DNA of 64,000 nt from Trichosphaerium sp. ATCC 40318 (taxonomy: Eukaryota; Protista; Tubulinea). The translations under genes were made by a program, and so were the position numbers. Shown here one piece after another: positions 31,019 through 50,996 of the stretch. The stretch is taken from assembly GCA_038496445.1 (NCBI GenBank), contig JALMLS010000556.1, positions 186,001 to 250,000 of the forward strand, written 5' to 3'. Under the pieces are notes generated by a model. That model saw only the letters and a list, made by a program, of their open reading frames with translations. It had not been told where the DNA came from and made no database searches. The first letter of the stretch is position 1. Each line of letters opens with the position of its first letter.

Positions 31019-31536
31019 GCAGTCATATTATCCACTACATTAACCGCACCTTCTTCTGAAGTATATCAAAAGACACATATGTAAGGTTGTTTTGAGGTTG
31101 GCAAGAATATTACGTGACGAATTAAAATACAAGAAACTGGGAAATGTAGCAGGTGTTGCTCAGTAGTAATCAATTTGAAACTGTTTTGCATGCGAAGAGC
31201 AATATATTGCAAACGCTTCAGCGCTGTAACACGTGATTCCTCTGAGTGCGTTCATTGAATTGTACAACTCGAATCCTCTCGTTGGAGCCCGTTGAGTCTC
31301 GGATCAATAACTGAATATCTTCATGTTACACTTGCTTGTTGATATGTACACTGTACAAACTACTGAATAAACTTGACTATTTGTCAGTTTTGATCTACAT
31401 AAACGAATTTAAGTAACAAAGCATAAACCACAAAAGAAGCTAGCAATACTACTTGTACGAGAATAATTTATTTTTCTAGCAAGATAAAAATAATTACCCT
31501 CATTGTTTTCAATAGTCCAAAAAACCAACAATAAGC

Positions 31537-32805
31537 ATGTACAAGACAGTTATCGTTCTCATTTTGGCGGTTTTAGGCACATGCTATTGTCAAAGACCTC
31601 CCAGCTTTATTCATGCTACCCCACCCGTGATGTCGCCTAATAGCGATGTAATTACAGTTAGTTTAGACGTCTTAGGAAGTACATAAGCTACAAGATTTGA
31701 GCCACATATTTTTATCAAATGCTCTTCCAAAAGCCTATTACCTAAGGCTTACTTTTAGCGCCCCAAGTTTTTGGTGTTCGATTCACAGGTCTCACACAAG
31801 TAGTTGGCTCACCATTATCTACTGCATTAAGTACGTAGTTCATATTCCAAAGAAGAAATGAGCTCACGTGACGGATGTTTTTGACTTAAAACAACTGTTT
31901 TTGTAGTACCTGCTCTGGATGGTTCTCTGTTGGTGTATTTCCAAGGAGGAGAGTTTGTAGTAAAGACAGAAAGTGATGTTGAGATATGTAGAGGAAATAA
32001 TGGATTGGTCGGAAGTGCCGTTTACAACGGCGGAAATTTTATTTCAGAAAACACGTTTTTCATATTCAGGACAGATATACAGCAGTTTGTGGAGTACACT
32101 TTTGATCCATCTTCGCCTGATTGTATTTCGGCACCTGTTCTATCATGTTCATTGACAGAATTGGTTACAGAGTGTATGTGGGAGGATCATAGAGTCAGGA
32201 ACTTACAAAGCTTTAAAAATGTTTATGTTTATTTTCATCAAATCTCAAACGACTACATTATGTGCAAAAAGAAATACTAAACTTCACATAGTTGTCATTG
32301 ATGGAGATGTAGTTTACATGTTATTAAGAATTGGAAATGGGCTAGAAATTCATCAGTTCCCAACTTCAACATTTACATCTGGATCATGCGCATTTTCTTT
32401 TAATGCTATGACATCGCTAACACCCGGGTTGTCACCTGATGTTGTTGTATTAGAAACATTAGATGATGATAGACTCATAATTCAGTCTGCGCTAATGACT
32501 TCACAAGTAGACAAAGTAACAGGCATGTTGCAGTGACATAACAGATACTTCATCCAAGGTTAACAATGTTCTAATTAGGAGTTGTAACTAATTACGGACC
32601 AAGTATTGTTTTCCCATTCTCTTACTATCCTGGGTTTGCTGGACCAACTGGACCAACGTGTGTTTCACGGTAAGACAGAGATCTTTCTTTTCTTTTTTTT
32701 TTCTGAGTTCTTTTCGTAACTGAACCAAGGCCTTGTTTAAACCTGTTATTTAGGAAACGATCAATACATTCTGATGAAGAAAGAATACAGCTTTTACGTC
32801 GTTAA
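31537..32805 (+). CDS. Secreted protein family, copy 1 (6 exons, about 285 aa)
   Basis: Signal peptide MYKTVIVLILAVLGTCYC|QRPP; exons splice in frame (intron 4 has a GC donor); ends GPTCVSR|KRSIHSDEERIQLLRR*. Confidence 0.85.
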
Positions 32806-33035
32806 TGAGCAACACCAAATAAAGCAAAACCTCCCTAATTGGTTTTGGATGTTTTTATTGTTGCAGAATGAGCACAAGTTGCTGAAGTTTAGTGTCACAT
32901 TATTGTGTTACATTGACTCAAAAGTCTTGATGGTGAGAAATTGTAAGAGATAGAGATATTTGAAACGTCAAATTTGAAGATCTGGCCCACTTCTAAATTT
33001 GATCATACAATCTGAAACTAGCGGTCTAAAACAGC

Positions 33036-33862
33036 ATGTACAAGACAGTTATCGTTCTCATTTTAGCGGTTGTAGGCACATACTATTGTCAGAGATCTCC
33101 TAGCTTTATTCACGTTGCCCCACCCGTGATGTCAACTAATGGTGATGTACTTACGGTTAGTACAGACCTCTCAGGAAGTACGTTTGCTTTACAAGACTTC
33201 GCCCCACTGTCATATTTTTGCTTTGTTCTCCAACTGTCATATAAGGCTTTCCTTTTAGTGGCTGAGCCTTCAATGTTCAATTCACAGACCTCATACAGGT
33301 AAAAATAATGGACACTATATCTACCGCGCTAAGTATGTGTTCGTATTCCAAAGAAACAAAACCCTCTCCAGCGATAAGTCACCAAATAGAACAAACCTTT
33401 TGAAGTCAGGCGACTTGGACTTAAATAACTATTTTTGTAGTACCTGCTCTGGATGGTTCTCTGTTGGTGTATTTCCAAGGAGAAAACTATATTGTAAAGA
33501 CAGAAAGTGATGTTGAGATATGTAGAGGAAATAATGGATTGGTCGGACAAACATTTATCATTTCCCAAGTTCAACACTTCCGGAGCACCATGCCATTTTG
33601 ATTTTAATGTCATGTCAGTGTCGATTGAAGGAGCATTAGAAAGATTAGATGACAATATACTCATATTAGGTGATTCTATCTCTTCAGAGGTAGACAAAAG
33701 TAACAGGTAGGTTATTCTTTAAAAACAAAAGCTTCATCCAAAGGGTTAACAGCTTTTAACCTAGGTAATGTACAACATTACGGACCGGATATTTTTTTAC
33801 CATTTAAATACTACTCTGGTTTCGCTCCACCAACTGGACCAGCATGTGTTTCACGGTAAGAC
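33036..33862 (+). pseudogene. Secreted protein family, copy 2 (internal deletion from exon 3 to exon 4, frameshifts, last exon displaced)
   Basis: Same signal peptide. Near 33550 it jumps from GNNGLVG directly to exon-4-like FPSST..GAPCHFDF. Homology stops just after the intron-5 donor (gtaagaca). Confidence 0.8.
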
Positions 33863-34099
33863 ATAATCAAGTTCAGGAAACAAAAAGTCTTGTGTATTAG
33901 AGCTGTGGACCATACATAGTTGTTGTGTTGCTACAACTTCAAACTTTACAAAAGATTCTCAAATAGTTCTGTTTGACACAGTTGTTGTGCTACTTATAGA
34001 GCTGTCACGTGACTATTTTTGATTTCCCGGCTTGTTCACAGTTCAAAATTTCGATGGCCTTTCGTTGTAGGAGTAAGTGTCTTGTTAAATACGTTAACA

Positions 34100-36131
34100 A
34101 GGTGGGAAAAAAGGGTGAAGCAAAGTGACAACGAAGATGATTTAAGTCAAATGACTTTCGGTTTTATTGAAAAAACACAACAATACACATGGAAACGGAA
34201 ACTGGATTAACGGCTTTACCTTACGTACGCTCCAAACGCGCTTTTAAACGTTATTGTGTATTTGTGTTTTTAAACGTTACAACACTGTGTTTAGTACTAA
34301 ACTACCGCCAGGAGATGATGATAGAGGTTACCTCATTGCTTGACGTAGCATCTGAGGTTTATTTTTACTCAACTTGCAAACAATTCCTTGTAGTACGCTA
34401 TACACAACTACAACGCATCTGTTTACCATTTTTTAATAGTTATTGAACGATTCATCCCGTTGGCAAGCCAGAATTCACCGAGAGTTCGGACAAGTCATTT
34501 TTCCTTGTTATTCTGTTTCAGATTCATCAAAATGGAAGGACCTTTATATTAGTGTGTTATCTCGTACGCTTTAAGTAGCTTTCTGACGACAAGCCAATGT
34601 GATTAATTATTCCAAAAGGAGGTATTCCTGGTGCTTCGTTGGTTCCTCACCATCGTGTTATTTCAGAATTTAATGAAGGTGATAAAACATGGCATATTAA
34701 ACATTTGGAGCCCCCCCGATCTAGAGCTATACGTCGTGTTGTGGTAAAACTTTAATTGAGAGTTGGTTTTTGTTTTTGTGGAGATAATCGTGATTGTCTT
34801 ACTTTTTGCATTACCAAGTCACGTGGCTTCAATTGACTCCACTTTTATCTTTTTTTTCTTTTCTTTATCTAATATTTTTGTTTTTTCATATAGACAGTTC
34901 AGACAACTCATGGATGGAATTTAAAGTGTGCAAGCAAGACTACTTTTGCAAATTGTATTATTGGTTATTACGAATCTGAAATTACAGGTTGTGGAAGGAA
35001 CGAAAAGTACGTTCATTCGCAATGTTTCTCCTAAAAAACTTACACACTTTTTTTTCATTGAAATGACAACTTGTTTAATTATAACGTTTCTTTTAGGTCT
35101 GTGGGTGTTGGTATAGGGCTAATAGATTATGTTCAATCGGAAAGAATGATCGGTTGGGCTACAAGTTAGTGACTACTGACAGTCTGCAAATCTAGAATTT
35201 TTTTAAATGTTTTTTTTAACTTTCTTTTTTAACAATCTCTAGGCTCTTGGGCGATGCATAGTGATGATATGGGTAAGTTATTTTCCTTAATAATACAACA
35301 AAAAACTAAATTAGTGATTTCTTATTCCTGCCAGGCAAATATTTTGGGTCTTCTGCTTATGCTACGTCTTTTATGGGCGGTGAATCTAAACACTTGGCTC
35401 TTGGTACCATAATAGGTACATCAAATCATTTTCTAGTAAATTATAGTCAACACGCTGAAACACACTACCAACATACAATTAAAGATGTAAAGCCAATTGG
35501 CAAGTTTTTCTTTGAAATGCAGATTCAAGAAAAGAAAAAAAAAAAGACAACATCCTTGCTGACTTCTGCCGCCTTTACGTGGGAGTGTATCTCTCCACAT
35601 TACAAAATGAAGGCTCATATATATTTATTTTGTTATTATTTAACTTTCTAAAGGATGTGGTTTAACTACTAAAGTGATTGAAGAACTCCCTGAAAAGCGT
35701 GTTGAGTTATATGCTTTTTGGACAGTTGATGGTGATTTGAAGCATGTTGAGCTGATTGACAGGTCTTGTACCTTTGATATGATCGAATCACTACGACCAA
35801 CAGTTAGTTTACTAACTGTTGGTGACATGCTACGCTTAAACTTTGGTTTGGTACGTACAGTTTATCATAAAAAAACCCAACAACAAATGCCAAAAAAAAA
35901 AAAAGAAAAAAACAGGATCCTATTGCTCTCTCCGTCTCATTTTTTTTACCCTTAATTATACTTTGGTTACTTATAGGGTGTTACTTGTTCCATTTTCTCA
36001 TTTGTTTCTAGGGTAAACCATTCTTGTTCGATGTAAGAAAAAATTACAACAAAGGAACAATTTTAAAACAAAGTACTACTGATACTACAAAACCAAAAGC
36101 AAAACAACAGTTTGATGGTCTCTTCTTTTAA
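34100..36131 (+). CDS. SPRY (RanBPM-like) domain protein; 5' end unclear
   Basis: YYESEITG, VGVGIG..MIGWAT|GSWAMHSDDM|GKYF, GTIIG|CG..AFWTVDG..LRPTVSL..LRLNFG|KPFLFDV. Confidence 0.75.
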
Positions 36132-36199
36132 GTCAAAATCTCCATGTAAAATAAACATCATTTTGCCTGCCGTGTTGTTCCTCTGTACAAAACACAGAG

Positions 36200-36410
36200 A
36201 TGGACCAACTGGACCAACGTGTGTTTCACGGTAAGACAGAGATCTTTCTTTTCTTTTTTTTTTCTGAGTTCTTTTCGTAACTAAACCAAGATCATCTTGT
36301 TGAAACCTGTTATTTAGGAAACGATCGATACATTCTGATGAAGAAAGAATACAACTTTTACGTCGTTAATTCTCATGTTTATGATCAACACTAAATAAAG
36401 CAAAACGCGC
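36200..36410 (+). pseudogene. Orphan 3' fragment of the secreted family (end of exon 5, intron 5, exon 6, 3' UTR)
   Basis: ggaccaactggaccaacgtgtgtttcacg|gtaagacagagatc..tatttag|gaaacgatcgatacattctgatgaagaaagaatacaacttttacgtcgttaa. Confidence 0.9.
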
Positions 36411-36817
36411 CGCATCTTCATAACAATTGTTTTGATTGTATTTAGAACAAGAATATGCAAGTATATTCTTAGATATCCACAGTGTTTTTACTTGTGAATC
36501 AAACGCACTAACCTTTTTTCTGTTTTAATCCTACCGTGCTTTGCCTGATAACATGCCTGTAATTCTTTTTTACTTTATCTGAGTCTTAGATGTCACTTTT
36601 TATAAACAACCATAAAGAGTGCTAAGTAGAAGGTAAATGTTGGATGTACATATTTTTTCAATGAATAAAAACAAGCGCTTCATAAACACTTCTAAATACG
36701 AAAGTACCACGAAACAAGCCGGAAATAAACCTTGTACGATGATAACAATAAAATATAACCAATAAGAGCAACGAGAAAGTTACCCTACTCATTTGTTTTC
36801 AATAGGTCTAACACAGC

Positions 36818-38123
36818 ATGTACAAGACAGTTATCGCTCTCATTTTGGCCTTTGTAGGCACATACTATTGTCAGAGACCTCCTGGATTTATTCACGCTGA
36901 CCCTCCTATCCTTGGGGATTTTAGCGACATACTTACAGTTAGTACAGATCCATCACAAAGTACGTAACCTTACACCAACCACAAAACACTTCATGTTTTA
37001 CTATCCATCTAGAGCGAAAACACTCCATATCGTTGTTTTGTCTCACGTCTTATCCATGTGATCTAAGGTTTTTTAGCACCTGAACTGTTCAATGTTCGAT
37101 TCACAGATCTGACGCAGGTTACTGACACATCTATATCTACTGCACTAAGTACGTAGTACAATCCCAAAGAAAAAACCACAATAAATCTGAGCAGATTTGA
37201 CTTAAAATAACTGTTTTTGTAGTACCTGCTCTGGATGGTTCTCTTTTAGTGTTATTCCAAGGGGAAGAGTATATTGTAAAGACAGAAAGTGATGTTGAGA
37301 TATGTAGAGGAAATAATGGAATGGACAGAACTGCTTCTTATAAGGGCGGGAATTTTATTTCAGAAAACACGTTTTTCATATTCAGGACAGATATACAGCA
37401 GTTTATGGAGTACACTTTTGATCCATCTTCGCCTGATTGTATTCCGGCACCTTTACCATCATGCACTGTATCAACACGGATTTTAGAATGTAAGTAGGAG
37501 GATCACAGTCAGAAAGGTGGTGTCAGAAAATGTTAAATTTCTGAGATATTTATACCTGTAAAGACTTACGCGTATGTACACTTAGCAACATACTAACTTT
37601 ACCTAGTTGTCATTGATGGAGATTCGGTTTACTTGTTATCAAGCAATATTATTTTTACATTAATTACTCAATTGCCTACCTCAACATTTGCTTCTGGAGC
37701 ACCATGTGAATTTGCGGTCACAGAATTTCTTGCTGCACAGTTGCCGTTCAATACTAGAGAATTAGAAGTATTAGATGATGATAGACTCATATCTGTCTCT
37801 GGTAATTCTGCCTTACAGATATTCAAAGCAACAGGTAATTACACATTGCATAAAGAAAATTCATCCAAGGCTAATAAGTTTCTTTATTTAACTAGGCGGC
37901 GCAAGTATGTATGGAACAAGTTTTGCTACACCGTTCTCTTACTATCCTGGGTTTACTCCACCAACTGGACCAACGTGTGTTTCACGGTAAGACAGAGATC
38001 TTTCTTTTCTTTTTTTTTTCTGAGTTCTTTCGTAACTAAACAAGATCATCTTGTTGAAACCTGTTATTTAGGAAACGATCAATACATTCTGATGAAGAAA
38101 GAATACAGCTTTTACACCGTTAA
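36818..38123 (+). CDS. Secreted protein family, copy 3 (6 exons, intact)
   Basis: MYKTVIALILAFVGTYYCQRPPGFIH..VKTESDVEICRGNNG..ENTFFIF..EYTFDPSS..; ends CVSRKRSIHSDEERIQLLHR*. Confidence 0.87.
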
Positions 38124-38525
38124 TTCCCATGTTTATGCGCTAAATAAAGCACCCTATAAATCATTTGTTTTTTTAGTTGGTGTTCAACAAACACCGTCCG
38201 TTTAGCGTCTTTCATTTGATACATTGACCACACAGTACTTTTTACGTGATGTACTGTAACTACCAGAACAGTGAGTTTCACGATAACAGTGAGTTTTACA
38301 ATAATTGTTTTTAGCACTTTTACGTTCACTGAATTATGCGTTGGATATCTGCTGAAATTGCTGATCGCTTTTATAAGAACTAGACCGCTTATCCACATAT
38401 TATGGAAAATATTTTAAACGAAGTAAAAGATAATAATACGTTTACCATAAACATCAAAAAACTGATAAGTCCTAATACAAAATTCATTATCCAGCAAACA
38501 ACCAGCATCAAACAACACAAGAATA

Positions 38526-38977
38526 ATGACAACTGTAGGAGAGAAAGTTAGATACGGTATGAGAATAGCAAGTAATGCAGATCTTAAAGCAATACTTGCC
38601 CACTTTAAGAAGGCTTGGAAACCACAACAAATTCAGTTTACAAAGAACGCTCTCGAACAACAAAAAGTTTGTCTTTCCGCTAAACAATGTGACAGTACGT
38701 TTGTGCAAACAAAAAAAATTATAGATTGCTGAGTAAAGTATGCTGAGGTCTGAACTGAAGCATCAGTTCTTTTGATAGCTCATTTTGTTGACACTGAGCT
38801 ATTTTTTTTAATATTCTGTCTGTAGCTATTGTACGAGCAGCATGGTCAGACAATCAATGTGGGGTAGCCAGAAATTGTGCCAAATACTGCTATGAAGGTA
38901 AACGGGCCTTTGAAAGTGCAATGAAGAGCGCAATGTGGTCGACAGAGTTTAGGAAACTTCAGCCGGAGTTGGAATAA
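38526..38977 (+). CDS. Small hypothetical protein (about 107 aa, 1 intron)
   Basis: MTTVGEKVRYG..AKQCD, spliced (gtacgt..tgtag) to AIVRAAWSDNQCGVARNCAKYCYEG..QPELE*, with AATAAA downstream. Confidence 0.6.
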
Positions 38978-39332
38978 ATTCACCACTTGATGTGTAGCTA
39001 TTTTTATCGTAAACATATTCAATAAAAGAAATTATATCAACACCTTATCTTTGCTTCTGCTGTTCTAATAGGGTCTACAAAGGAAACTGCCTGTTGATGT
39101 GTTTAGTAACTGTCGGTAACGCTTATTTTGGAATTGCCCCGAAAAGCGGTAGTTTTAGCATTGCGGCGCTTTCTAGGTTTTAAATCGTACACTGGAAGCG
39201 CGATTTACTATCTCCATCGACGCTATGAGAGATTTGGTATCAAGCCGAAAACTGATTGATAACCAACAGAATCAATGTGATAGTTAAGGCAACGTAAGTT
39301 GTCTTTTTACAATAAAAAAACTCTACAATCTA

Positions 39333-39771
39333 ATGGAAAGCAGCCCTTCATTTATGATTACTTCTCTAATGATGGGAGTTGCTACTGCAACTCTTGTACT
39401 TGAAGAATTCGAACAAAAAATGACAAACGATAATAACAACGATATTAATACAACTGAAACCATACAACAGTTCGTGGACGAATACAACAACGATTTGAGT
39501 AGCGAAAGAATGTGCGCAGAAATAAAAATCAATCAAATTATTTAATTCTTTACTTAATACCATTCCTGTAGATTACCACAAGAATATGATGATCTCTTTG
39601 ATAGTTTTATTGGAAACCAAAGAACTTGTAAATTCAATAAATCAATCTAAAATGACATACATCTGTCAAACTACTTCAAAATTCCAGCTTGGTTTTTTTT
39701 CTTTGTTTTTTTACGTCCGAGCTTCACAATCACTCAACTCGGCATTAAAAAGAATTAACAAACTGACTTGA
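39333..39771 (+). CDS. Possible small hypothetical protein split by one frameshift
   Basis: Two adjacent ORFs join into about 145 aa if one base is added near 39540; no motif recognised. Confidence 0.3.
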
Positions 39772-39865
39772 GTCATGGTATTTTGGTTTTACAATTGTTT
39801 ATTATTGGGGTTCATTTAATGGGAGTAGGGGGCAACAGGTTAAGGAAGAGTTTAGAGATCCTTCT

Positions 39866-42275
39866 TCAGTCTTTTTTCTTTGGTCTTATTTTTAACGAAT
39901 TAAAATATGGGTGTTTTAGTGCTTGAACTGCCTTGATACGGCTATTTGGATCATATACCATTAATTTCTGTTGAAAAAAATATCAGTAAAGGCGTTGAAA
40001 ATAACAACGATTGATCAATTTGTACAAACAATTCAAATACATTGTAAAGTCTGGTTTTTAGCTGTAGAAAAAATAGATGTCATGAACGTAACGTTCAATA
40101 ATTAGTTTAATATAAGCATAGTCACACGCCTTAAAATTGATTTTTTTGAAACAGTTTGAAAGCGAAACAAATAGGGCAAAAAAGGGAAAAAAATAAGAAA
40201 AATAATTAAAGAAAATACCTGTATTAAATCATAGCCATCCTCTGATAGGTGTGTAACGAGTTGCCTGTACCCAAGTCCCTTGTACGTTGGAAAATCGTCA
40301 GACCACAATGGGAGTGTTCTGGCAGCAGGGTAGTACGTTTCAGTCGGTGTACCAAGTCCCTAAAAAATAAGGATAAGCATAATCCACAAAAAAAGTAAAA
40401 GTAGTTTCTTGTTGTTAACTGTCTCCACAATACCTTAAAAATACGTTGTAATTGATCTTCGGCTGAAGATCCTGGGAATAGAGGCCTGCCTACAGCCATT
40501 TCTATGATAGAAAATTAATCAAACTAGTAAAATGGCAAAAATAAAAAGGCGCTTCGGTTTTTTTGGGTTTTTGTGTTAATACTTTATTTCTCGTAAACCT
40601 GAGCGCCCACAGATGGTAAAAAGGTGTTTAAAAACAAATTGACGCCGTTTATAAAATTATTGTAGAAATACAAGGTGAAATTATGATTAAAAAAGACAGG
40701 AAAAAAATCTTACCTCCAAAAATGCAACCTGAAGACCAAATGTCAATTTCGGTGCTATAATTTTTCGAGCCTAATAATACATCTGGGGGACGATACCACA
40801 GTGTCACCACCTCGTTAGAGTAACCACGAACAGGTATACCAAAGGTCCTAAAGATAGATTAGTACTTTAAAGCATTACTAAACAAAAAAAATTGCTCTTT
40901 TTCTACTGGAAAAAAAACAGCGAAAGCTGCACTACGCTCACTGAAAAGCGTAGTAAAACTTTTCCCTTAAATTACCAAATGTATACAACAGGCGTGTATC
41001 ACTGCTCGGTAAAGTTTTTTTGAAGAACAATTTGGAAATTTCGTTACCTTGCTAGACCAAAATCAGCGAGCTTCAATTCTCCCTTTTTACTAATAAGAAG
41101 ATCTAAAAAAAAAATTGTTAACACCAAGGCAAAGAACGTTATTATAATTTCGAAAAAAAAAAAAAAAAAGTCAAATTTTTTGGATTATACTCACTTTGAG
41201 GCTTCAAGTCGCGATGTAGAATACGTTTATCATGTACAAACGCAATACCTTTAAGTAACTGATATAGGAAAGACTAAAAAGGAATAAGTTAAATGGCTCA
41301 AAGGTTCAAAAAAAAAAAATCACCAAAAAAAAAAAAGTTGGAATTGTACAAACTACTCCCTCTTGACACTCCCACATGGCGTCAAGTTATCATTAATAAT
41401 AGGTTATATTTGTATTATTAAGAAAACAGACGCGGAACGGAGATTAAGATGACGTAAACACGTAACTCCCAGCTTGAAGAGAAAAAAAGCGTTGAATAAT
41501 AAAAAAAGCTTTCGTGGAGTTTTTAGGCGTTATATATTACCTTCATTAACTCAGGCGATACTGCTCCACCATGATCGTCCATATATTTTTTTAAATCTTG
41601 GTCTAAGTACTCAAATACTAACGTCAAGCGTTTTACTTCGTGAACTACGTCAAACAAGCTAATGTAGAAGGTCAAATGTCAAAATTTCTGTTTTGATTTT
41701 TGTTTTGGCATGGGAAACGGTAAAATACGCACCGAACAACATTTGGGTGATTTAACTCCTTCAGTATTGTGATTTCCCGTATAGTTGTACTTGGCACGCC
41801 TTCTTCATCAGACTCGAGGCGGATCTGCTTTAAAGCAACAACTTGGCCCGTGGTTTGTAAAAAATGAGTCAGTATGGCATAAAAATATAAAACGACGTTC
41901 TGTACTAGCTTTTGAGGTGAAAAAAAAACGTTTTGCGGTGTGTAATAGCGCCACAATCAAAATTGTAACAAAATACGTTCGCCACAACGAAAAAAAGAGA
42001 AATCAGCTGTTTTGGTCTCAAATAAGGTAAATACCGCGCAATTACTTCGACAAGGTTAACGGGTGTATTAAAAATCGGGTTTAAAAAAGATTTAGAAGTG
42101 GCGACCGCGCTACAGAAAAACCGCTTATTGGTTTGAAAATACGACACACGCAAGGTAATTTTGCTATTTACAGAAATCGAAAATATTGGAGGGTGGATAA
42201 CGTATTATGTTTGGCTTTGTAGACAATCCCATATGTACCCTCTCCGAGTCTATCGGTTCTGGTGTACTTGTCCAT
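39866..42275 (-). CDS. CDK5: Cyclin-dependent kinase, CDK5/Pho85-like, 9 exons
   Basis: [86 protein letters not shown]. Confidence 0.9.
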
Positions 42276-42535
42276 GTCACTGTAACTTACAGACAGCTGT
42301 GAAAAAAGCGCTGTTGAGTCAAGAATGTTCCCAAGTTTTTTTGTAACCTTTTTTTGATGCAATGATCAATATTACTTCAGGTTTTGGTTGTGTTGCAATC
42401 AAGCGCGTTTTTTTACTTTTACGTTTTCATTGCAATGTTTACAGAATACAAAATTAATGCAAAGTTGACATGTCGTTGATAGTGATTTTTCTTTAAGAGA
42501 GGTGGTTTAATTCCATCCACTTTGCGCTGTTGTCA

Positions 42536-43027
42536 TTAACTTCTTGGTGCAGGATCGTCTCTCGTTGGGTAGCCCTCCATTGCGTCGTTGTAATACTAGA
42601 ATTAAGTGAGTTACGTATTAATACATGGCGCAGGTATGTGAAATCAAGTGTCTACAGTGTAGTGCGACTGTTAAATCAAAAACCGCTCAAATTATTAACA
42701 ATTGTATTACTGATGCAGATTCTGCGTACCATTTCGTTTCTGAACACCATGAGGAGAATACTAAGCGTTGTGAGCTACAGTATAAATATAATTAACTTAC
42801 GGTGGTGGTATGAGAAACATAGCGCCTAGTAGCGCAATCTCGGACCATGTTGGATTGAAGAAAGGCTCACAATTATTCCTGTACCACATACTTTCTTCTA
42901 TGCCACGATGAGGGTTAAAGCCCAATTTCTGTGTTGGTCTAGACATCGAAAAAAAGCGTCTTTGTTGATATAAGGCAAAACGCCTAACGACAGCGCGTTG
43001 GGCAGTTTGTGCGAGCAGGTTACTCAT
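42536..43027 (-). CDS. Small mitochondrial single-TM protein, NDUFB4 (complex I B15)-like, 3 exons
   Basis: Arg-rich, acid-free presequence; RGIEESMWYRNNCEPFFNPTWSEIALLG resembles the IEEW..RENLE.NFR.T..N.AL pattern of plant B15; a TM segment follows. Confidence 0.55.
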
Positions 43028-43157
43028 CCGTTGTTTTGGTCGCTCACTACAATTTGACTTTTGCTGATTTTTAGGTTGGCACTAATTTCTACAGCAGTAA
43101 TTGTAAATGCTTCCAACATGACGTTATTACTTCAAGGCTAAAATATAAAGGAGAGCA

Positions 43158-46100
43158 ATGGCGGAACGTCATTTTAGCGTAACTGACGATGATGTTGAGG
43201 GTGAAAAGGCAAGGGAGCGCGTCAAAGATGCTTTAAGACGAAAATCAAAAGGTATTGTTGGCAGGGACAAAATTGAACGCGAAAACGGCCACATTGGAAA
43301 GAAGAAAGCACGGTCTCGTAACACTGGGTGAGTATGGTTGTACTGTCTTGAATGGGCAATAGTATACTCAGTACAAAATACAAGTTACAATTTTACTCAT
43401 CTTTATGATCTAGTTCGTCCAAAGCAAGTACAAAGAACTGTTTAAACCTATTATGGGAACGGCGGGAGTTGTTGACTGTATTTCGCGAACATCTTTATCA
43501 CGTTGGAAACGCATTTAACCTCCGATTCTATCTTGAGTGCAGTGAGTCACAAAAACAATAGGTTTTGATCTTTTTTTTTACATTTTTTACCTCTTTTTGG
43601 TAATTTTGTTTTTCGCGACTGCACGCTCTACGATCAGTTAAAAACTGGCTACAATCGCTTCAAAAACTATGTGTACTCATTTTACATACTTACTGATCCA
43701 TTTAAGAGCTATTTGCAAAGGTTGAAGATGTAGAACTTTTAAGCCGTCGAGCACATGAGATTTTTGACGCATATATCAACCCGAGGGGTATGAGAGCTTT
43801 GGATTGTATAACCGATAGTTGTTATAAGGTATGTTGGTATTACTCTTACAAAAAATTATCTATTAAAGGCCGTAACAACTTGTTGTTCACGTGCTATCCA
43901 AATACGAAAAAAAAACCCTTGAAAACCGAAACTTTTCACACCTTTCATAGAAAACTAGTTCCTGTCGTTAACTTTTTTTAACATTCTTCACCGTAGTGTA
44001 TAAACCAAGGATTGTCTTCTATCAATAGACATTTATTTGAACCAGCTTTGGCAGTTGTCATCCAAATCTTACAAAAAGATTTCGAAAAGTTTCGTAAATG
44101 TGAAAAATACCCAAAAGATCTTCCTAATGAAGAAACGTTACCAAATATCAGAAGGATCCGTTCACAAACTATTATGTATTATGAGTATATGCGCAAGATA
44201 AAACGTAGTGAAGAAACGGCAAAGAGTGATCCAGGAATACGCGTTTTATTGTACAACAATCCAATAACAGTGTACGCCAAAACAGATTTTTTTTTCTCGT
44301 TGAAACAGTTCCTAAATCTGACTACTTTGATCAAGGAAAGAGCCAGCCGATGATGATTCTAAACTCACCTTTGAAAAGCTTTTTGAACATAGGGAGCTAA
44401 TGAGAGCATTTGAAGAATTCTTAAAGATATCTTATGCTCAAGAAAATTTGTATTTTATAATTTCTGTTGGTACCTCCCTTTGCAAATCTAAACTCTTAGA
44501 GAACCTTCCTTTTAATACTCAATTAGATTCGTACATGGCCCTTCGAGATCAAGAAGAGCGTACAGCACGAGCACTTGAGATTTTTGAGCAATTTGTTCAC
44601 CCTAGTGCAGCGACACCTATTAACCTCAGCCATGAATCTGTAAAGGTACAAAAAACGTCCTTTGATTTTTATTCAACTTTTATTTCTTTTGCAATGAATC
44701 TTTCACCAGCTATTTGATGGCTTCCAATTCATGAATATTTTCCTGAGTCATGGGTAGCAAACATCTTTTGGTGTAAGATGGGACCCCTCATTGATTGCTT
44801 TCCAAGATTTTTTTATTTGATTTTTTTTTTGTTTTGTGGGCGCTCATTGTTACTAAGTTACTTACTGGATTTTTTTTTATCTAGTTGGTTCAAGAAAAAT
44901 TAGAGAATCCAGCAGAGATAATTTTCGAAGAAGCTAGAGATATTGTTATGAATTATTTAAAGAATGACTACTTTCCTGATTTTAAAATGTCAGAGAACTG
45001 TCCAAAGTGGCCATTACCACAAAAACGTAAAGAGGAAAAAACGATAGAGTTATATGATACATTAGTAAAGATTAGGAAGAGTAATAGTTTAAAAAAATCA
45101 AAGAAAGTAAGTCACCATTATTTCTTGTTCACAAAATCTCGTTTTTTTCGCTTTTATTTTTTGTTGTCGTGCGCACTTCTTGTTGAGTTGTATCGTGTTT
45201 ACTCTAACATATGTCCTATCGCTGAGTACTAATATGTTATGCTTTTAGGCACCTCAAATGGAGGATATTTATACCAGTAGAGATTTATTAATGGATTTTC
45301 GAGAGTTTGTTTATTATCGACATTCTCAAGAACATTTACAGTTTGCTCTTGAGTGTGGTAAGTTAAATTCATATTTTTTATTGCAAAGACTTGTCAATGT
45401 TTACAGTTTACAATTATTTGTATCAACGTCTTCGACACACAATCACGTGTTGAGTAAAAGGCGAAAAAAAAAAGAAGTTTCGGACGACAGTACTTACCGG
45501 ACGTTGTAGAAATATACAGACGTACAAATGATCCAAAGGAGCGTGTTATACGAGCGGAACAAATATATTCACGATTTTGTCAACCTGATGGTAAAGATGC
45601 TGTAAATATTGATGAAATGTTGGTAGAGGTATAATTTGATTCATTTTTTTTTTTGTAGTCTCGTTTACTTGTCTTCTCTGTAACACATGTAAACCTTGAT
45701 TTGCTTTATTTAACATATTACAATAGATGATAGAGGAAAAAATGAAGGGAAGAAACTTACCTAAGGACTTGTTTCATGACGCTAGTGAAGCAGTACGTTT
45801 TTACGAAAACTGCAATCTTTTCTTTTTATGCTGATGCTAAACTTTGTACCGATACTTAATATCTTATTGATGTAGGTTATGGTTATTCTACAACACCAAT
45901 TATGGCCTCAATTCCTTCGTTCGGAAATGTACTCACCGCCAAAGAAGAAGAAGGATAAGAAAGTACCTGCTAAGCTTTCAAGACGTAACACAATAAAAAA
46001 TTATGAAGAACTTCGTGCCCGCCTAAAGGTGGAAGAAAGGACTGCTCCACCAACATGGGATGCAATCTGGAGTGAAAGAGATCTGATGTTATCATTCTGC

Positions 46101-46710
46101 AGTTTCTTACATGAGAAGAAAGCGGAGAATAGGATTCGTTTTGTACTACATGCAGGTAATAGCAAATTTTTGAAGTGACAACTTTATTGCCTTTACGGAG
46201 ACATGTCAACCTTTGTTTTAGAGCTGTTCACTGAGGAATCGAATGATGAAAAGAGGAAAGAAAAGGGTCACTTTCTTTATAAAGAGTACATAAAACCTAA
46301 CTCAGTAATGCATGTGCCGTTCACAAGTGAATGTGTCAAGGTAACCCAATTTTTTTGAAAAGTCCATGCCCGAAGAACTCCCCGAAAAACCCTCCAGAGT
46401 GCACTATCCCTCAGGCTTTAAACTTCCCTGTACTGCCTATTTATTTACGGGGTAATTCATTGTGCATGCTTCTAGAGGAGTTTAGATTTCCGTCGAAACT
46501 CTGAAGCAAAATGTGTTTTGATTCAATTTCAATTCAATACCAAAATAATCTTCTTGACACTTTTGTTAGTGGATACGCGGAAATGTTGCTCTTGCGAACA
46601 AGTCCTTGTTCAACGAGGCTTTATTTCAGGCATGGTATTATCTAAAGAATGAGTATTGGCCGGAGTTCATAGCCATGGGGTCGTGGAGTCATGGACAAGC
46701 GAGTAAATAG
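43158..46710 (+). CDS. Protein with four tandem RGS domains
   Basis: Four repeats of the RGS core: LLTVFREHL..NAFNLRFYLE; LMRAFEEFLKISYAQENLYF..IFEQFVHPSAATPINL; LLMDFREFV..SQEHLQFALE..IYSRFCQPDGKDAVNI; LMLSFCSFL..AENRIRF..LYKEYIKPNS..FNEA..LKNEYWPEF. Confidence 0.87.
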
Positions 46711-47390
46711 TTTTTTTCTTTGCGAATCTCAAAAAAAAAAGACGAAGAAATCATGTAGCGTATTGAAGTTATTTCAACTTGTATTGTATACCTCTATCGC
46801 TATTTCGCGCAAAGAAACATTGTAGATCTTGTAGTTTTAACATAAAAAAGAAATTGAATCACTATGCTCGCGAGCAAAAGGTCTCATTTGATTTACGAGG
46901 TAGTTAATTGAAACGGAAAGGTTTGTCCGATTTAGACGCATACTTTGGGTCTGAAGGGTATCAATTATGGTAAATGTGCTGCTTGTTGTCATAAAACGCG
47001 TATTGAGAGGTTTTTTGGACAGTACACAGTGATTTGATTGCTTAAAGATTGAAAGTTGCATTAAAGCCGAAAAGAGTCTTTAACGTCGCAACGAACTGGC
47101 ACTATACTTGAAAATATCGCGGTAGTACGTTTTGCGATCCGAGAAAGGACATTCAAGGGTTTTGTAAAAAAGGATTCAAGCAAAACTGCACTGCTGTACT
47201 AATCGATAAAGGAGTATATAGAGTATGGTGTTATCGTTAGCAATACATTTCATCTCCGTGTGACTTAAAATAACTTCCCTGGGACGGAGTTTTTTGGGAT
47301 TATATTTTCGTATTTTTTTGATTTACGCAAGCAGCAAAACTCAACTCTAAAGTTAACTCCCTTTTGCATCATAATCAATATATTAATAGT

Positions 47391-49348
47391 ATGAGCGGAC
47401 CAGAAGCAAACGTACGCAGTATGATATTATTTACAGCAGTATTAATTGTTTTAAAGCCAATAAGACCTCTATGTGTATGGAAGTTAAAGGCGGCAATAAA
47501 GAGACTCATACTCGATGGTTCTCTTCTTATTTCAACAAGCGCTAATGATAAAATACGCGTATGGTCTATAAACCCATTGACTGGACATATAACGCCCGAA
47601 AAGACTTTCAAGGTATGGATAATCTATTTTTTGTAGTTTTTTCAATGTTTAACGAATTGTAGGGCCACAAGGGCACACCAACTAAATTAGTGATTCACAA
47701 GAGCATACTACTTGCACTAAGCTCCCACGACAGTACTCTTAGATCTTGGAATCTTCAAGTACGTCCAAAAAACGCTTTTTATTGCAATTTTTTTTTAATT
47801 CCTAAATCGTCATTTGTCGGCCGATTTTTTTGCATCTCGCGTTCAAAGCTAATAAAACCATACAGACACTTGAACCTCATAAGAACTTTGAAGGTCATGA
47901 ACAACATTTATCTGACCTTGCAGTTTGTGAGAAAGAGGATATTATGTACACTTCTAGTTTCGATAATACAATACGTTCATGGAATATAATGGTACCTAAA
48001 ATTGTTATTGTTTCTATTAATTGCTTTTTTTTTTTTGGATACGATATCCATGCTCATTATGTTACCGTTTTTGGAAAAACTGAAAAACTGTTTTGTAGTC
48101 CTGGTCAAAAAATAGTTTCTAACTTACTTTAGAAAGGAGGTAAAGCGTTGAATGTATTCAAAGGACATTCAGATAGCGTCACTTGTGTTAGAGTAAAAGG
48201 AAAACACTTATTTTCGGCATCTGTACGTATTGCTTCCTTTTGATACAATATTTCGAAATTATTGTTCTCTGTAATGTTATAAACCTCGAAATCTAACTTT
48301 TGTAAACGCGTAGTCGCGTTTCGTGTTTTTTCGCGTTTTTTTTTTGCCAAGGCTCTAATGTTTCTCAAATATAGGCTGATAAGACTGTACGTATTTGGTT
48401 ACGTAAAGGAGGGCAAAATACGAACATTTTGCATGGTCATACGAATTTTGTGTTTGGACTTCATTTGCATTCTGATACTATATTCTCTTATTCCCACGAT
48501 GGCACAGTTAGATTATGGAAAATGAAGGTAAAGAAAATAGTTTTTTCGGACAAAAAATTTCCTTAAAGAGAGTTAATATTACATGACGCTATACAATTGA
48601 TTTCTTCTTTTGTCTGCCTGTTATATTGTTTGCACGTACTAATATATTACATTGTAGACTGGCGAGCTTAAACATACAATTGACGTTGGGTACCCTGTCA
48701 AGTCCATGAAATTACAAAACAAGCAGTTGTTTACCAGTGCGAAGAGTATATTAGAAAGTTGGTCATTAAAAGGCAAAAAGGTATGACCTACGAAACACAT
48801 GTCTAACAATTTTTTTCTTCAGTTTTTTTTTTTGATTATCGTTTACTTAAATTGGCTTTTTTAACCTCTTAAATAGCTTTACACTGTCGAAGGACACTCT
48901 GGTCAAATATTATGTAACACATGGTATGGTAAAAAGTACTTGTTTACAGGTGGTCAAGACCGTACTGTTCGAGCATGGGATTTAGATGTAAGTAACAACT
49001 TTGCACTTTTTATGTTTGCTTTTATATTCAACAAATTATTCGCTTTTTTTCCGCCCCACACCTTGGAGATACTACTCTTACAAGCGAAAAACCCTGTGAC
49101 ATAACGTATTTCTGTGTGGGGCAGAAAAAAAATGGGAGTTGAATAAGAAACTATGTAGAGAATGAAGATATCTTATTTTTTTCTTCTAGAATAAAGGAAA
49201 ACAAATGCTACTATTCCGTGGTCATGAGGGCATGGTTAACGCTTTAGAATTAAAGGATAGATGGGTATTTAGTGGTGGAGAGGATTGTACAATACGACTA
49301 TGGCCAAACCCAATCTTCTCAAAATCAGAGGCAAAAGGATGGGTCTAA
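47391..49348 (+). CDS. WD40-repeat beta-propeller protein
   Basis: Repeated GH..S.D.T(I/V)R.W units, e.g. FEGHEQHL..SSFDNTIRSWN, FKGHSDSV, LHGHTNFV..SHDGTVRLWK, EGHSGQI..GGQDRTVRAWD, FRGHEGMV..GGEDCTIRLW. Confidence 0.92.
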
Positions 49349-49744
49349 TCGGATTTCAACACGATCAATTCGTTTCTTCTTTTTTTTTCATGTCTTTAAA
49401 ACGTAACTGGAAAAGTTAAAATACTTAATGAAGACATCATGATGGAGAGAATTGTACATATATACTCATGAAGTGACTTGTATTTCTACGATAAATAAAC
49501 AACTTTTATGTTAATTGTATGGCGCGTACAACAATTGAGATTAATAGTGATATTTCCCAACTGACGTCAGTTGTTACTTCGACCTACTTCACAGTCGCCT
49601 CAGTATTTTCGGCATCGACTGACTGAGCGACACTACACTTATCACTCTTGTCCTAATTCTCATCAACAATACAACCAAAACAATTGCTATGAAGCTGAGG
49701 TGCGTTTTGCTTTATTTGGTGTTGATGACATAAACACATGAGAA

Positions 49745-50996
49745 TTAACGGTGTAAAAGCTTTATTCTTTCTTCATCAGAATGTATTGATCGTTTCCTAA
49801 ATAACAGGTTTCAACAAGATGATCTTGGTTTAGTTACGAAAAGAACTCAGAAAAAAAAAAGAAAAGAAAGATCTCTGTCTTACCGTGAAACACATGTCGG
49901 TAGAGTTGGTGGAGTGAAACCAGGGTAGAATTTAAACGGCAAAGAAAAAGATGGTCCGTAATGCTGTGTAGAACCTAATTAAACCCGTTACCTTAGCTGG
50001 AGGTTCTGTTATAAATGTATAACTTACCTGTTACTTTGTCTACCTCTGAAGAGATAGAAACATCACCAAGTACGAGTCTATCATCATCTAATCTTTCTAA
50101 TGATACAATTGCAGACAGTGACAATGACAAAGCAGTTAGCGTTGACATGGCAGTAAAATCAAATTGGCATGGTGCTCCAGATGCAAGTGTTGAACTTGGG
50201 AACTGATGAATGGATGGTCCGTCCATAGAGCGCAATAATATGAAAAGTACATCTCCATCAATGACAACTAGGTAAAGTTAGTATGTTGCTAAGTGTACAT
50301 ACGCGTAAAAGTTTTCACTTAAAAATTGTAATCTTCTGCTGTGATCTCCCTACTTACAATCTCCAGTCCCAGCCATTGTAGTGCATGATGCTACAGGTCC
50401 CGACATACAATTAGCAGAAGATGGATCAAAAGTGTACTCCATAAACTGTTGTGAATCTGCGTTAAATATGAAAAACGTGTTTTCTGAAATAAAATCCCCG
50501 CCGAAGTAATTAGCGGTTCTGTCCATTCCATTATTTCCTCTACATATCTCAACATCACTTTCTGTCTTCACTACAAAATTATCTGCTTGGAATAACACTA
50601 ACAGAGAACCATCCAGAGCAGGTACTACAAAAACAGTTATTTTAAGTCAAATCTGCTCAGATTTATTGTGGTTTTTTCTTTGGGATACGTAGTACGTACT
50701 TAGTGCAGTAGATAAAGGGGTATAACCGGTTGGCGTGAGACCTGTGAATTGAACATTGAACAAATCAGGTACTAAAAGTCAGCCTTAGATCGCAGATTTG
50801 AACAACAGTAAAAATACAAAAGTTGTAGCATAAAGTCTTCTAAAGCTTGCGTACTTCCTGAGAGGTCTATACCGACTGTAATTACATTGCTATTAGGTGA
50901 CATCATAGGTTGGGGAGCGTGAATATATCCAGGAGGTCGTTGACAATAGCATGTGCCTACAAAGGCCAAAATGAGAACGATAACTGTATTGTACAT
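49745..50996 (-). CDS. Secreted protein family, copy 4 (6 exons, intact, inverted)
   Basis: MYNTVIVLILAFVGTCYCQRPPGYIH..; same intron positions as copies 1 and 3; ends CVSRKRSIHSDEERIKLLHR*. Confidence 0.87.

Follow-up and report, generated by a model that had tools for sequence, protein, structure and literature searches.

A 64,000-nucleotide stretch of the Trichosphaerium sp. ATCC 40318 genome (the window, in whose coordinates all positions are given) carries a cluster of related genes. We favor, with moderate confidence, the reading that these genes belong to a family of secreted propeller proteins shaped by duplication, exchange of segments and positive selection on a variable face, with a likely role in recognition or binding. 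Gene copies would arise by tandem and inverted duplication, and repeated short exchanges among the members of the cluster, the pseudogene included, would diversify them. The same exchanges would account for the near-identity, among members of the cluster, of the intron 5/exon 6 module and certain other introns, and positive selection would act upon the variable face.

Gene models and transcription

Repeat finding and reading of the DNA agreed on the contents of the window and their coordinates: three intact genes of six exons each (copies 1, 3 and 4), a pseudogene (copy 2) and two 3' fragments. Together they span 20 kb and form a clustered set of possible donors. A sequence-only reading that preceded this work had counted four copies plus fragments; four homologous units are indeed present, but copy 2 has a frameshift, a stop and a deletion, has no exon 6 and is a pseudogene.

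31425..31454, + strand: non-coding 5'UTR exon of copy 1, where a spliced RNA contig aligns by its loose 5' end
~31455-31515, + strand: 5'UTR intron of copy 1; the RNA contig re-enters the window at 31515
31537..31678, + strand: copy 1 exon 1, with the start codon, the signal peptide (MYKTVIVLILAVLG...) and the first part of the N-terminal region; RNA joint 31678/31759, GT..AG
31759..31830, + strand: copy 1 exon 2, 72 nt, both ends phase 1; RNA joints 31678/31759 and 31830/31907
31907..32173, + strand: copy 1 exon 3, predicted blades 1-2, holding constant block VKTESDVEICRGNNG as well as the variable loops D-A and B-C; from model, alignment and RNA
32292..32522, + strand: copy 1 exon 4, predicted blades 3-4, beginning FVIDGD and including LDDDRL; RNA contig 100% identical
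32523-32578, + strand: copy 1 intron 4, GC-AG; RNA joint compatible within a 3-nt ambiguity
32579..32669, + strand: copy 1 exon 5, with the last modeled strand, a stretch rich in Pro and Gly, and the invariant Cys preceding RKR; from model and RNA
32670..32805, + strand: copy 1 intron 5 and exon 6 (32754-32805), the latter holding the tail KRSIHSDEERIQLLRR and the stop
33036..33860, + strand: copy 2, pseudogene, from DNA reading; exon 1 33036-33177, exon 2 33259-33332, exon 3 from 33441, exon 5 33765-33855
36133..36450, + strand: fragment A, left over from a lost copy (exon 5 end, intron 5, exon 6 and 3'UTR), upstream of copy 3
36818..38123, + strand: copy 3, intact, 283 aa; exons 36818-36959, 37077-37148, 37223-37489, 37607-37834, 37896-37986 and 38072-38123
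49745..50996, - strand: copy 4, intact, inverted, 287 aa; exons 50996-50855, 50771-50700, 50624-50358, 50267-50028, 49974-49884 and 49796-49745
51300..51600, - strand: fragment B, an exon 6 and 3'UTR remnant plus intergenic sequence, upstream of copy 4; inverted repeats I13, I16 and I20

The spliced models gave intact open reading frames in all three genes, with a protein of 284 aa for copy 1. Exon lengths (142/72/267/228-240/91/52 nt) were nearly identical across copies 1, 3 and 4. Introns 1-4 are in phase 1 and intron 5 is in phase 2, and intron positions, phases and the signal peptide are common to the copies, in agreement with the first description of the family. In copy 2, exon 2 carries a +2 frameshift and a stop, exon 3 is truncated past GLVG and joined to mid exon 4, and exon 4 ends at 33706 with an extra nucleotide. 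The 3' end of copy 4 and fragment A share 95% identity, and fragment B matches the region 3' of copy 1.

All five coding junctions of copy 1 were borne out by RNA contigs, including that of the GC-AG intron 4, and the exon 4-5 sequence was reproduced exactly. The 5'UTR exon/intron layout of copy 1 is also present in a paralog on another contig, L004, whose gene model agreed with a public transcript over 861 nt without a mismatch. RNA evidence is confined to L004 and either copy 1 or its allele; at least two members are transcribed. Among the RNA runs examined we found no cover for copy 2 and no contig for exons 1-3 of copy 3. In exons 1 and 3, one RNA contig was about 5% divergent from copy 1. 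The one observation behind a putative donor role of the pseudogene is a copy-2-like patch in an RNA contig.

That 5% difference could be taken as a sign that the copies are an assembly artifact, either collapsed haplotypes or chimeric contigs. The probable source assembly is haplotype-reduced according to its paper (PMC10521059), and some distant loci of the family were found twice, with equal scores, on different contigs. We regard this explanation as hardly credible, however, given that copies 1-4 lie on a single contig, are 15-40% divergent and have different flanks, that exons 4-5 and the junctions of copy 1 are exact in RNA contigs, and that the L004 transcript matches the genome exactly.

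Mosaic relationships among the copies

Every motif pairing listed in the sequence-only reading was found both in the alignment and in the DNA. GLVG is common to copies 1 and 2 and GMDRTA to copies 3 and 4, while FRTDIQQ..PDCI and PFSYYPGF pair copies 1 and 3, and GAPC.FDF, SISSEVDK and QHYGP..LPFK pair copies 2 and 4. Per-feature identities and a sliding window agreed that the closest partner shifts along the gene. Copies 3 and 4 were closest to each other (85-100%) upstream of the gene, in introns 2 and 5 and in the 3' half of intron 3. In exon 4 and the 3' half of exon 1 the closest pair was copies 1 and 4, and in exon 5 and the middle of exon 3 it was copies 1 and 3. Copy 2 was nearest to copy 4 in its exons 4 and 5.

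Copies 3 and 4 are 97% identical in intron 2 and 100% identical in intron 5, yet only 62% identical in exon 4, where dS is 0.54. Their near-identical intron 2 had been noted before, together with a near-identical end of intron 3, but part of the latter is in fact the coding start of exon 4 (FVIDGD). The accompanying statement that introns are more conserved than exons applies to introns 2, 3 and 5 of copies 3 and 4, and to intron 5 in all copies, but not to introns 1 and 4.

Copies 1, 3 and 4 and fragment A have intron 5/exon 6 modules that are 91-100% identical. A functional explanation, in which the near-identical introns and this module are regulatory elements, embedded RNAs or a 3' cassette kept without gene conversion, would account for the exon 6 peptide, which every close paralog retains, whether in this cluster or on another contig (81-94% aa). 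It would also be consistent with the C-terminus of the distant member P0125, which ends in the same Cys-basic-tail arrangement. In the paralogs on other contigs, however, exon 6 alone is conserved from the module, intron 5 conservation being confined to this cluster and intron 2 likewise unconserved, and an Rfam search found no RNA family in the window. We consider a purely functional origin very unlikely.

Tests of segmental exchange

Exon trees conflicted over copy 2, which grouped with copy 1 for exons 1 and 3 but with copy 4 for exons 4 and 5. In exon 4 the pairing of copies 2 and 4 had a bootstrap of 99 and that of copies 2 and 1 was rejected (AU 0.008); in exon 1 it was the pairing of copies 2 and 4 that was rejected (AU 0.019). 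These rejections speak against a single topology for all segments. Run tests were significant in intron 2 for copies 3 and 4, in exon 4 for copies 2 and 4 (both p <=0.0002) and in exon 3 for copies 1 and 3 (p 0.004). Silent-site divergence varied over a 6-14 fold range within single gene pairs. Informative four-taxon patterns differed between the 5' and 3' parts at p 1.6e-5, for a split chosen post hoc. The PHI test was non-significant, both on the codon alignment (p 0.07) and on the genomic alignment (p 0.16).

Among the tests that we ran, AU and run tests were significant and PHI was not. Segmental exchange is supported by the conflicting exon trees with their AU tests, the long runs, the silent-site heterogeneity, and near-identical introns beside exons with dS of about 0.5. 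Judged from these alignments, the case that different gene segments have different histories is supported, and the support is good though not unanimous given PHI.

The PHI result would also suit birth-and-death divergence without exchange, in which the patchwork reflects uneven constraint and bursts in single lineages. Pair agreement among three taxa shows just which lineage changed, so the three-copy pattern could largely be lineage-specific acceleration. Such a model does not readily accommodate the AU rejections of alternative placements of copy 2, the shift in four-taxon patterns, the run tests, or the silent divergence of exon 4 between copies 3 and 4 beside introns that are 0-3% diverged, and we judge it distinctly unlikely.

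Predicted fold and variable face

The AlphaFold model of the full-length transcript protein P0121 was all-beta, with pLDDT of about 90 over residues 62-252, and that of a distant paralog was also all-beta, with a mean pLDDT of 80. Both contained at least 16 strands grouped in four blades. The fold matches listed were beta-propellers, with Foldseek E values down to 6e-7 and VIA Z scores of 10-12 over 170-207 residues, and the propeller-like fold first suspected from a beta-rich pattern is supported by the two models and the fold searches. Residues 1-60 and 254-286, on either side of the four modeled blades, had pLDDT <50 because only two alignment rows cover those ends. The exon 3-5 core is probably a beta-propeller in which four blades are modeled with confidence and the total is probably five or six, the terminal segments perhaps adding one or two blades and closing the ring.

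Outside the core, the signal peptide would direct the protein into the secretory pathway, and the six invariant cysteines probably form disulfides. A conserved tail is encoded on its own exon beyond a tribasic RKR site, and is probably a propeptide cut by a kexin-type protease or else a sorting signal.

The D-A and B-C loops had an amino-acid identity of 26%, against 60% in the strands and 74% in the A-B and C-D loops. We assigned the loops to predicted faces from the general topology of propeller blades. By that topology, the conserved blocks would comprise the strands together with the loops of one face (A-B and C-D), with the hypervariable D-A and B-C loops on the opposite one, and the model makes this variable face most likely the ligand-binding surface.

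We compared site models M2a and M1a with a custom implementation on six sequences, on trees of 3-8 substitutions per codon, with loops hard to align and tests that within-exon recombination may inflate. M2a was favored for the whole gene (LRT 42) and, on exon-specific trees, for exon 3 (LRT 20.5, p 3.5e-5) and exon 4 (LRT 14.9, p 6e-4), with omega 3.8-8 at 8-23% of sites in these two exons. None of 12 null simulations reached 14.9, and one of the 12 passed the 5% chi-square line. Ten of 15 selected sites fell in the D-A and B-C loops and none in the A-B and C-D loops (Fisher p 1e-4), so that the selected sites cluster on one face, as assigned by topology.

Diversifying selection had been inferred beforehand, with one-face clustering named as something to check, and both are supported here. 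Pairwise Nei-Gojobori dN/dS in the variable loops was nonetheless below 1, at 0.85-0.9, for a loop average of only about 0.9.

The loop average (pairwise 0.85-0.89) would also suit a reading in which exchange is real but the variable loops drift under relaxed constraint without positive selection. Decay is frequent in the family (the pseudogene, two fragments, the 5'-truncated copy L007 and loci carrying stops), and recombination would inflate the site-model tests. Against drift stand the fit of M2a over M1a in exons 3 and 4, the neutral simulations that stayed below the observed value, the lack of any selected site in the opposite-face loops, the intact reading frames and the transcription of at least two members. 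We consider drift unlikely, and prefer positive selection on the variable face.

Extent of the family and comparison with known systems

Elsewhere in the 70-Mb genome we found four close paralogs, on other contigs, and no fewer than 40 distant loci. Pfam searches with exons, read-through ORFs and P0121 gave no match, nor did a PDB sequence search. A profile search of 1.84 billion proteins returned two real matches only, both MMETSP transcripts of the same organism. The sequence-only reading, which did not recognize the family, was right on this point. NHL repeat (PF01436) and LDL-receptor class B YWTD repeat (PF00058) profiles had no match above the curated cut-off. DUF6923 (PF21959) matched none of the window copies; one distant paralog scored 15.3 bits (E 0.017), below the gathering score of 27 bits. 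Judged by sequence, the family is lineage-specific, without relatives outside this organism.

Among the best structural matches were the YWTD propellers of ApoER2 and LDLR (Z 12.1 and 10.3) and the NHL domains of Brat, Mei-P26 and Thin (TM up to 0.61, Z 10.4-10.6). NHL and YWTD propellers are similar in size (~260-280 aa) and have four-stranded blades, as here. They are six-bladed, however, whereas four blades are modeled here, the cysteine pattern differs and there is no Pfam profile match. WD40, BamB and sema propellers score about equally, and the resemblance therefore reflects a shared fold rather than kinship with NHL or YWTD proteins.

Horseshoe crab tachylectins and the tectonins of Physarum, an amoebozoan, are lectins of innate recognition: small beta-propellers, secreted or displayed on the surface, that bind microbial sugars. 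The likeness lies in the small propeller and in the occurrence of tectonins in Amoebozoa, but the Pfam scans found no tectonin or tachylectin repeat here. To our knowledge, neither family is known for hypervariable loops or mosaic paralogs. For a binding face that varies, these lectins nevertheless provide the likeliest working analogy.

Fungal NWD/HET non-self recognition genes (Podospora) encode cytosolic STAND/NLR-like proteins with hypervariable WD40 propellers. Positive selection acts at a few positions on one face, and paralogous loci exchange sequence and so generate a repertoire. The present family resembles them in its propeller scaffold, one-face selection and exchange between paralogs. 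NWD/HET genes shuffle whole WD40 repeats, however, while the proteins here are predicted to be secreted and lack the WD40 signature, and the exchanged tracts cross exon-intron borders.

Trypanosome VSGs, chicken Ig, MHC and snail FREPs are variant-antigen and immune-type multigene repertoires that use pseudogenes or paralogs as donors. The analogy to antigen, lectin or toxin repertoires drawn in the sequence-only reading would be a putative one. Clustered paralogs with a pseudogene and fragments, segmental mosaics, and variation concentrated at exposed residues would be the points of likeness. In contrast to those systems, the tracts here are old (79-97% identity) and not somatic, and the organism is a free-living amoeba rather than a parasite under host immunity. 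By analogy, variation mainly in the loops of one face resembles that of binding or recognition proteins. The orphan family is real, and its mode of evolution is already known from other systems.

Under the reading that we favor, the likely role of these proteins would be to recognize or bind external targets that vary, for example prey, microbes or glycans on cell surfaces. A bolder version, which we think unlikely, is that the family is a germline-encoded variable recognition repertoire of secreted propeller binders, in which the binding face is continually remade by conversion from neighbors and pseudogenes, alleles are mosaic and few members are expressed per cell or stage. If that were true, the family would serve the recognition of changing prey, microbes or mating partners, and Amoebozoa would have a diversification system, akin to innate immunity, that is built on a propeller scaffold.

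Results

Structure of the gene cluster

The window consists of intron-rich, eukaryotic DNA with a G+C content of 34-40% in 2-kb windows. The published draft genome of Trichosphaerium sp. comprises 70.87 Mb in 710 scaffolds, its GC content is 37.7% and its introns average 75 nt (PMC10521059); introns in the genes described here are 44-149 nt long. Repeat analysis of the window identified four homologous units, together with two incomplete ones, in the interval 31.5-51.6 kb, and splice sites were assigned to the copies by homology and phase after reading the DNA. Repeat analysis and spliced models together confirmed the overall observation of the sequence-only reading, that of a mosaic family with four copies plus fragments:

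31537-32805, forward strand: copy 1, intact, six exons, 284 codons
33036-33860: copy 2, pseudogene
36133-36450: fragment A, 3' end of a lost copy, directly upstream of copy 3
36818-38123, forward strand: copy 3, intact, six exons, 283 codons
50996-49745, reverse strand: copy 4, intact, six exons, 287 codons
about 51300-51600, reverse strand: fragment B, 3' end of a lost copy, directly upstream of copy 4

Exon lengths are nearly equal in copies 1, 3 and 4, with introns 1-4 in phase 1 and intron 5 in phase 2. Copy 2 has a +2 frameshift and a stop in exon 2, a deletion that fuses exon 3 (right after GLVG) to the middle of exon 4, and one surplus base at the end of exon 4; its exon 6 is absent. 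Because fragments A and B precede copies 3 and 4 just as the 3' end of copy 1 precedes copy 2, the duplicated unit must have extended from the 3' end of one gene to the next gene.

Other genes lie among and beside the copies. Between copy 2 and fragment A, an expressed, spliced multi-exon gene occupies 34169-35755, with at least 8 joints in cDNA contigs and a SMART-seq oligo at the 34169 end. Housekeeping-type genes lie between copies 3 and 4 at 40100-42362 (reverse strand), 43790-46500 (forward) and 47364-49100 (forward); judged by ORF translation, one encodes a CDK-like kinase, one has several RGS-like domains and one carries WD40 repeats. A 401-aa ORF at 56902-58107 (forward) encodes an FAD-linked berberine-bridge-enzyme-like oxidase (PF01565 and PF08031 in relatives) whose top public match is just 54% identical, the nearest named ones being from protist transcriptomes, Ectocarpus and Willaertia. 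The 285-aa ORF at 52053-52910 (reverse) has a long, low-complexity C-terminal tail rich in Lys/Arg/Ser/Thr.

Transcript support for the gene models

We compared the independently derived spliced model of L004, a close paralog on contig C3 of the same genome, with L061, the mRNA of a 286-aa protein (P0121) that a profile search of 1.84 billion proteins had found in the MMETSP transcriptome collection. There were 0 mismatches in 861 nt, and the mRNA revealed a short 5'UTR intron. A search of sequencing runs yielded three small ones, and the remaining RNA data were contigs of two small public runs (X1/X2), which a SMART-seq oligo at the loose end identifies as cDNA. Such contigs are good for junctions and unable to prove chimeric transcripts, and they may themselves be chimeric. 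All five coding junctions of copy 1 were present in them (31678/31759, 31830/31907, 32173/32292, the GC-AG intron 4, and 32669/32754), as was the 5'UTR intron. Intron 4 of copy 1 (32523-32578) has a GC donor where the other copies have GT, and its removal is confirmed by the RNA joint. No RNA covered copy 2 or exons 1-3 of copy 3 in these two small runs. The gene models are correct.

Mosaic relationships among the copies

The closest partner of a given copy was said in the sequence-only reading to shift along the gene, and identity by feature and in sliding windows bears this out.

Table. Closest pairs of copies by feature, with nucleotide identity; exon values for copies 3 and 4 are included.
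65 nt upstream of ATG: copies 3 and 4, 93-95%
Intron 2: copies 3 and 4, 97%
Intron 3, 3' half: copies 3 and 4, 91-94%
Intron 5: copies 3 and 4, 100%
Exons 3, 4 and 5, copies 3 and 4: 83%, 62% and 66%
Middle of exon 3: copies 1 and 3, 94-98%
Exon 5, 3' half: copies 1 and 3, 94-100%
Exon 1, 3' half, and exon 4: copies 1 and 4

Copy 2 resembles copy 1 in exons 1 and 3 (87% and 94%) and copy 4 in exons 4 and 5 (83% and 79%). Intron 5 is conserved solely inside the window cluster, and on other contigs just the exon-6 part matches, which points to concerted evolution and not ancient constraint as the source of its identity. Rfam returned nothing over the whole window, so the conserved introns give no hint of an embedded RNA gene. 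An isolated piece of the intron 5/exon 6 module, 73% identical, lies at 94869-94972 of contig C158.

For alignment, dN/dS, trees and codon models the exons were concatenated, and tree support was taken from ultrafast bootstraps (iqtree). Copy 2 grouped with copy 1 in the exon 3 tree (support 87) and with copy 4 in the trees of exon 4 (99) and exon 5 (92). AU tests rejected the pairing of copies 1 and 2 in exon 4 (p 0.008) and of copies 2 and 4 in exon 1 (p 0.019), and were borderline in exons 3 (0.064) and 5 (0.052). Permutation of runs of agreeing polymorphic sites yielded p <=0.0002 in two cases, copies 3 and 4 in intron 2 and copies 2 and 4 at the exon 4 end; for copies 1 and 3 in exon 3 p was 0.004, and for copies 1 and 2 in exon 1 it was 0.005. 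Four-taxon informative patterns differed between the 5' and 3' parts at p 1.6e-5, the split point being picked post hoc. The PHI recombination test was not significant (p 0.07 and 0.16), which counts against exchange.

The strongest single argument for segments with different histories is heterogeneity at silent sites. In the window trio, dS was 0.06 in the tail, 0.14 in the conserved loops and 0.84 in the variable loops, a range that point mutation combined with selection on amino acids is unable to give. Copies 3 and 4 have a dS of 0.54 in exon 4 and differ by 3% in intron 2 and 0% in intron 5. Loop misalignment adds some noise to dS; yet even where the alignment is good, in the exon 4 block PTSTxASGAPC, 3 of 11 codons differ silently between these two copies. 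On balance, the proposal of segmental gene conversion largely holds, with the AU tests, run tests and silent-site heterogeneity in its favor and the PHI result the exception.

One cDNA contig of 947 nt over copy 1 (31515-32805) may bear on recent exchange. It matched the genome perfectly over the 321 nt of exons 4-5 and showed 8 differences in exon 1 and 14 differences in exon 3. At 10 of 13 alignable differing sites, including 6 of 6 within 11 nt, the RNA carried the base of the copy 2 pseudogene. Neighboring genes in the same RNA contigs were ~1-6% off the genome sequence, which makes a different haplotype or isolate the probable source of the RNA. The contig resembles a copy 1 allele that carries a copy-2-like tract, possibly a trace of conversion, or else an assembler chimera, and we treat it as a lead only. 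It terminates in the L004 3'UTR, past the shared exon 6; this switch is most likely an assembler jump inside that exon.

Predicted fold

Two relatives of the window copies were modeled: a distant paralog, as a read-through ORF, and the public full-length P0121. The distant paralog model had a mean pLDDT of 80; its ORF spans an in-frame 48-nt intron, so this fold holds a 16-residue intron-coded insert (pLDDT <50). The P0121 model reached a pLDDT of ~90 at residues 62-252, with both ends below 50 owing to too little alignment depth; in A7, the alignment behind this fold, the first 12-18 residues are misplaced in some C-half rows. Both models are all-beta with strands in groups of four, and the matches listed by Foldseek (E down to 6e-7) and VIA-align (Z 10-12 over 170-207 residues) are beta-propellers, with YWTD, NHL, WD40, BamB and sema types represented. 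No propeller family stands out among them, and language-model neighbors were propeller families too. The earlier suggestion of a propeller-like fold is thus upheld by two predicted models and their structural matches. Four blades are securely predicted, two each from exons 3 and 4 with the last strand from exon 5, and one or two further blades may come from the first 50 residues and from the C-terminal stretch rich in Pro and Gly. We considered exons 3 and 4 as mutual duplicates and rejected this: MAFFT stacked the halves, yet hhalign gave a probability of 0.5%. The recurring element is a blade-level pattern, not a two-blade unit.

A predicted variable face under probable diversifying selection

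When the strands were laid on the alignment, the constant blocks corresponded to strands plus the A-B and C-D turns (motifs LDGS, SEN, DGD, DDDR, TESD, DPSSPD, PTSTxxSGAPC and DKVTG), and the variable blocks named in the sequence-only reading were the D-A and B-C loops. Across the six close paralogs, amino-acid identity fell to 26% in these loops, against 74% in the A-B and C-D loops; strands lay in between at 60%. From one loop to the next, an antiparallel blade switches faces, and this topology would place all D-A and B-C loops on one face of the propeller.

Pairwise dN/dS was 0.36-0.81 over whole genes (0.68-0.81 inside the window) and 0.85-0.89 in the variable loops, so averages do not exceed 1. 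Site models (M1a versus M2a, F3x4, our own codon implementation, six sequences) on a single tree gave an LRT of 42 (p 7.5e-10), with omega 4.6 at 13% of sites. The same comparison was made with a separate tree for each segment.

Table. M2a versus M1a by segment, each on its own tree.
Exons 1-2: LRT 1.4, p 0.51, not significant
Exon 3: LRT 20.5, p 3.5e-5, selected-class omega 8 at 8% of sites
Exon 4: LRT 14.9, p 6e-4, selected-class omega 3.8 at 23% of sites
Exons 5-6: LRT 5.6, p 0.06, not significant

Twelve M1a simulations at exon 4 divergence gave LRTs of 0-7.4, with 0 of 12 reaching 14.9. Fifteen propeller sites had a posterior >0.8: 10 in D-A and B-C loops and 5 in strands, 4 of these 5 adjoining those loops. 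None fell among the 45 gap-free positions of the A-B and C-D loops (Fisher p 1e-4). Diversifying selection on one face therefore has moderate support, limited by the small number of sequences, the long branches, doubtful alignment of the loops and recombination that may have occurred inside exons. The earlier claim of such selection has this support for exons 3 and 4 and for sites on one face; it does not extend to mean loop dN/dS.

Conserved tail and cysteines

Exon 6 encodes KRSIHSDEERIQLL(R/H)R, which follows an invariant Cys-Val-Ser-Arg. The peptide is 81-94% identical in all close paralogs, and both dN and dS are lower here than elsewhere in the gene; one distant member likewise ends in a Cys, two Arg and a short tail. 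The tribasic site suggests that the tail is cut off by a kexin-type protease or has a sorting role. Six Cys are invariant across the six close paralogs (Cys18, those of EICRG, PDC, SC and APC, and the one before RKR), suggesting three disulfides, one perhaps linking the N- and C-terminal regions.

Family size and distribution

With copy 1 exon 3 as query we found 15 places in the 70.3-Mb genome, 4 of them close paralogs that share the six-exon structure (L004, L005, L006 and the 5'-truncated L007). Queries with distant members raised this to at least 40 loci, clustered and on many contigs, and the phase-1 intron between the two core halves is present in all family loci. Two distant loci, L013 and L015, were candidates for intron-less genes; this was rejected, since their long ORFs simply continue across an in-frame intron that occupies this phase-1 position.

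Several members are near-duplicates. L006 (428 kb) and L007 (1236 kb) are nearly identical and lie ~800 kb apart in opposite orientation on contig C1, and in L007 the start codon and 5' end are gone. Distant members are doubled or tripled, with identical or nearly identical scores, on contigs C286/C150, C287/C331/C325 and C11/C423; residual haplotigs or segmental duplications of very recent date could explain this.

Searches for relatives agreed with the earlier remark that the family was not recognized. Pfam gave nothing above threshold for single exons, read-through ORFs or full-length P0121, and profile search of PDB sequences gave no match. In word-based protein search a distant paralog ORF retrieved nothing and P0121 only itself, and the real matches among 1.84 billion proteins were only P0121 and P0122, both from MMETSP transcripts. 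Trichosphaerium is one of the MMETSP organisms, and none of these searches found a member beyond this organism.

Discussion

Free-living amoebae must distinguish a wide range of bacteria, algae and viruses, and to our knowledge little is known of their recognition molecules. At 40 or more loci, the Trichosphaerium genome encodes a private family of small, predicted-secreted propellers. Their hypervariable loop face bears signs of positive selection, and clustered copies trade segments. This adds a gene family that the databases lack, two unannotated transcripts excepted, with a fold and an evolutionary mode of known kinds. If the proteins are not binders, the locus still offers a clean, textbook-style example of how concerted evolution and diversification act on adjacent parts of one gene. 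If they are binders, they would represent a new scaffold for natural binding diversity and give a handle on prey and microbe recognition in Amoebozoa.
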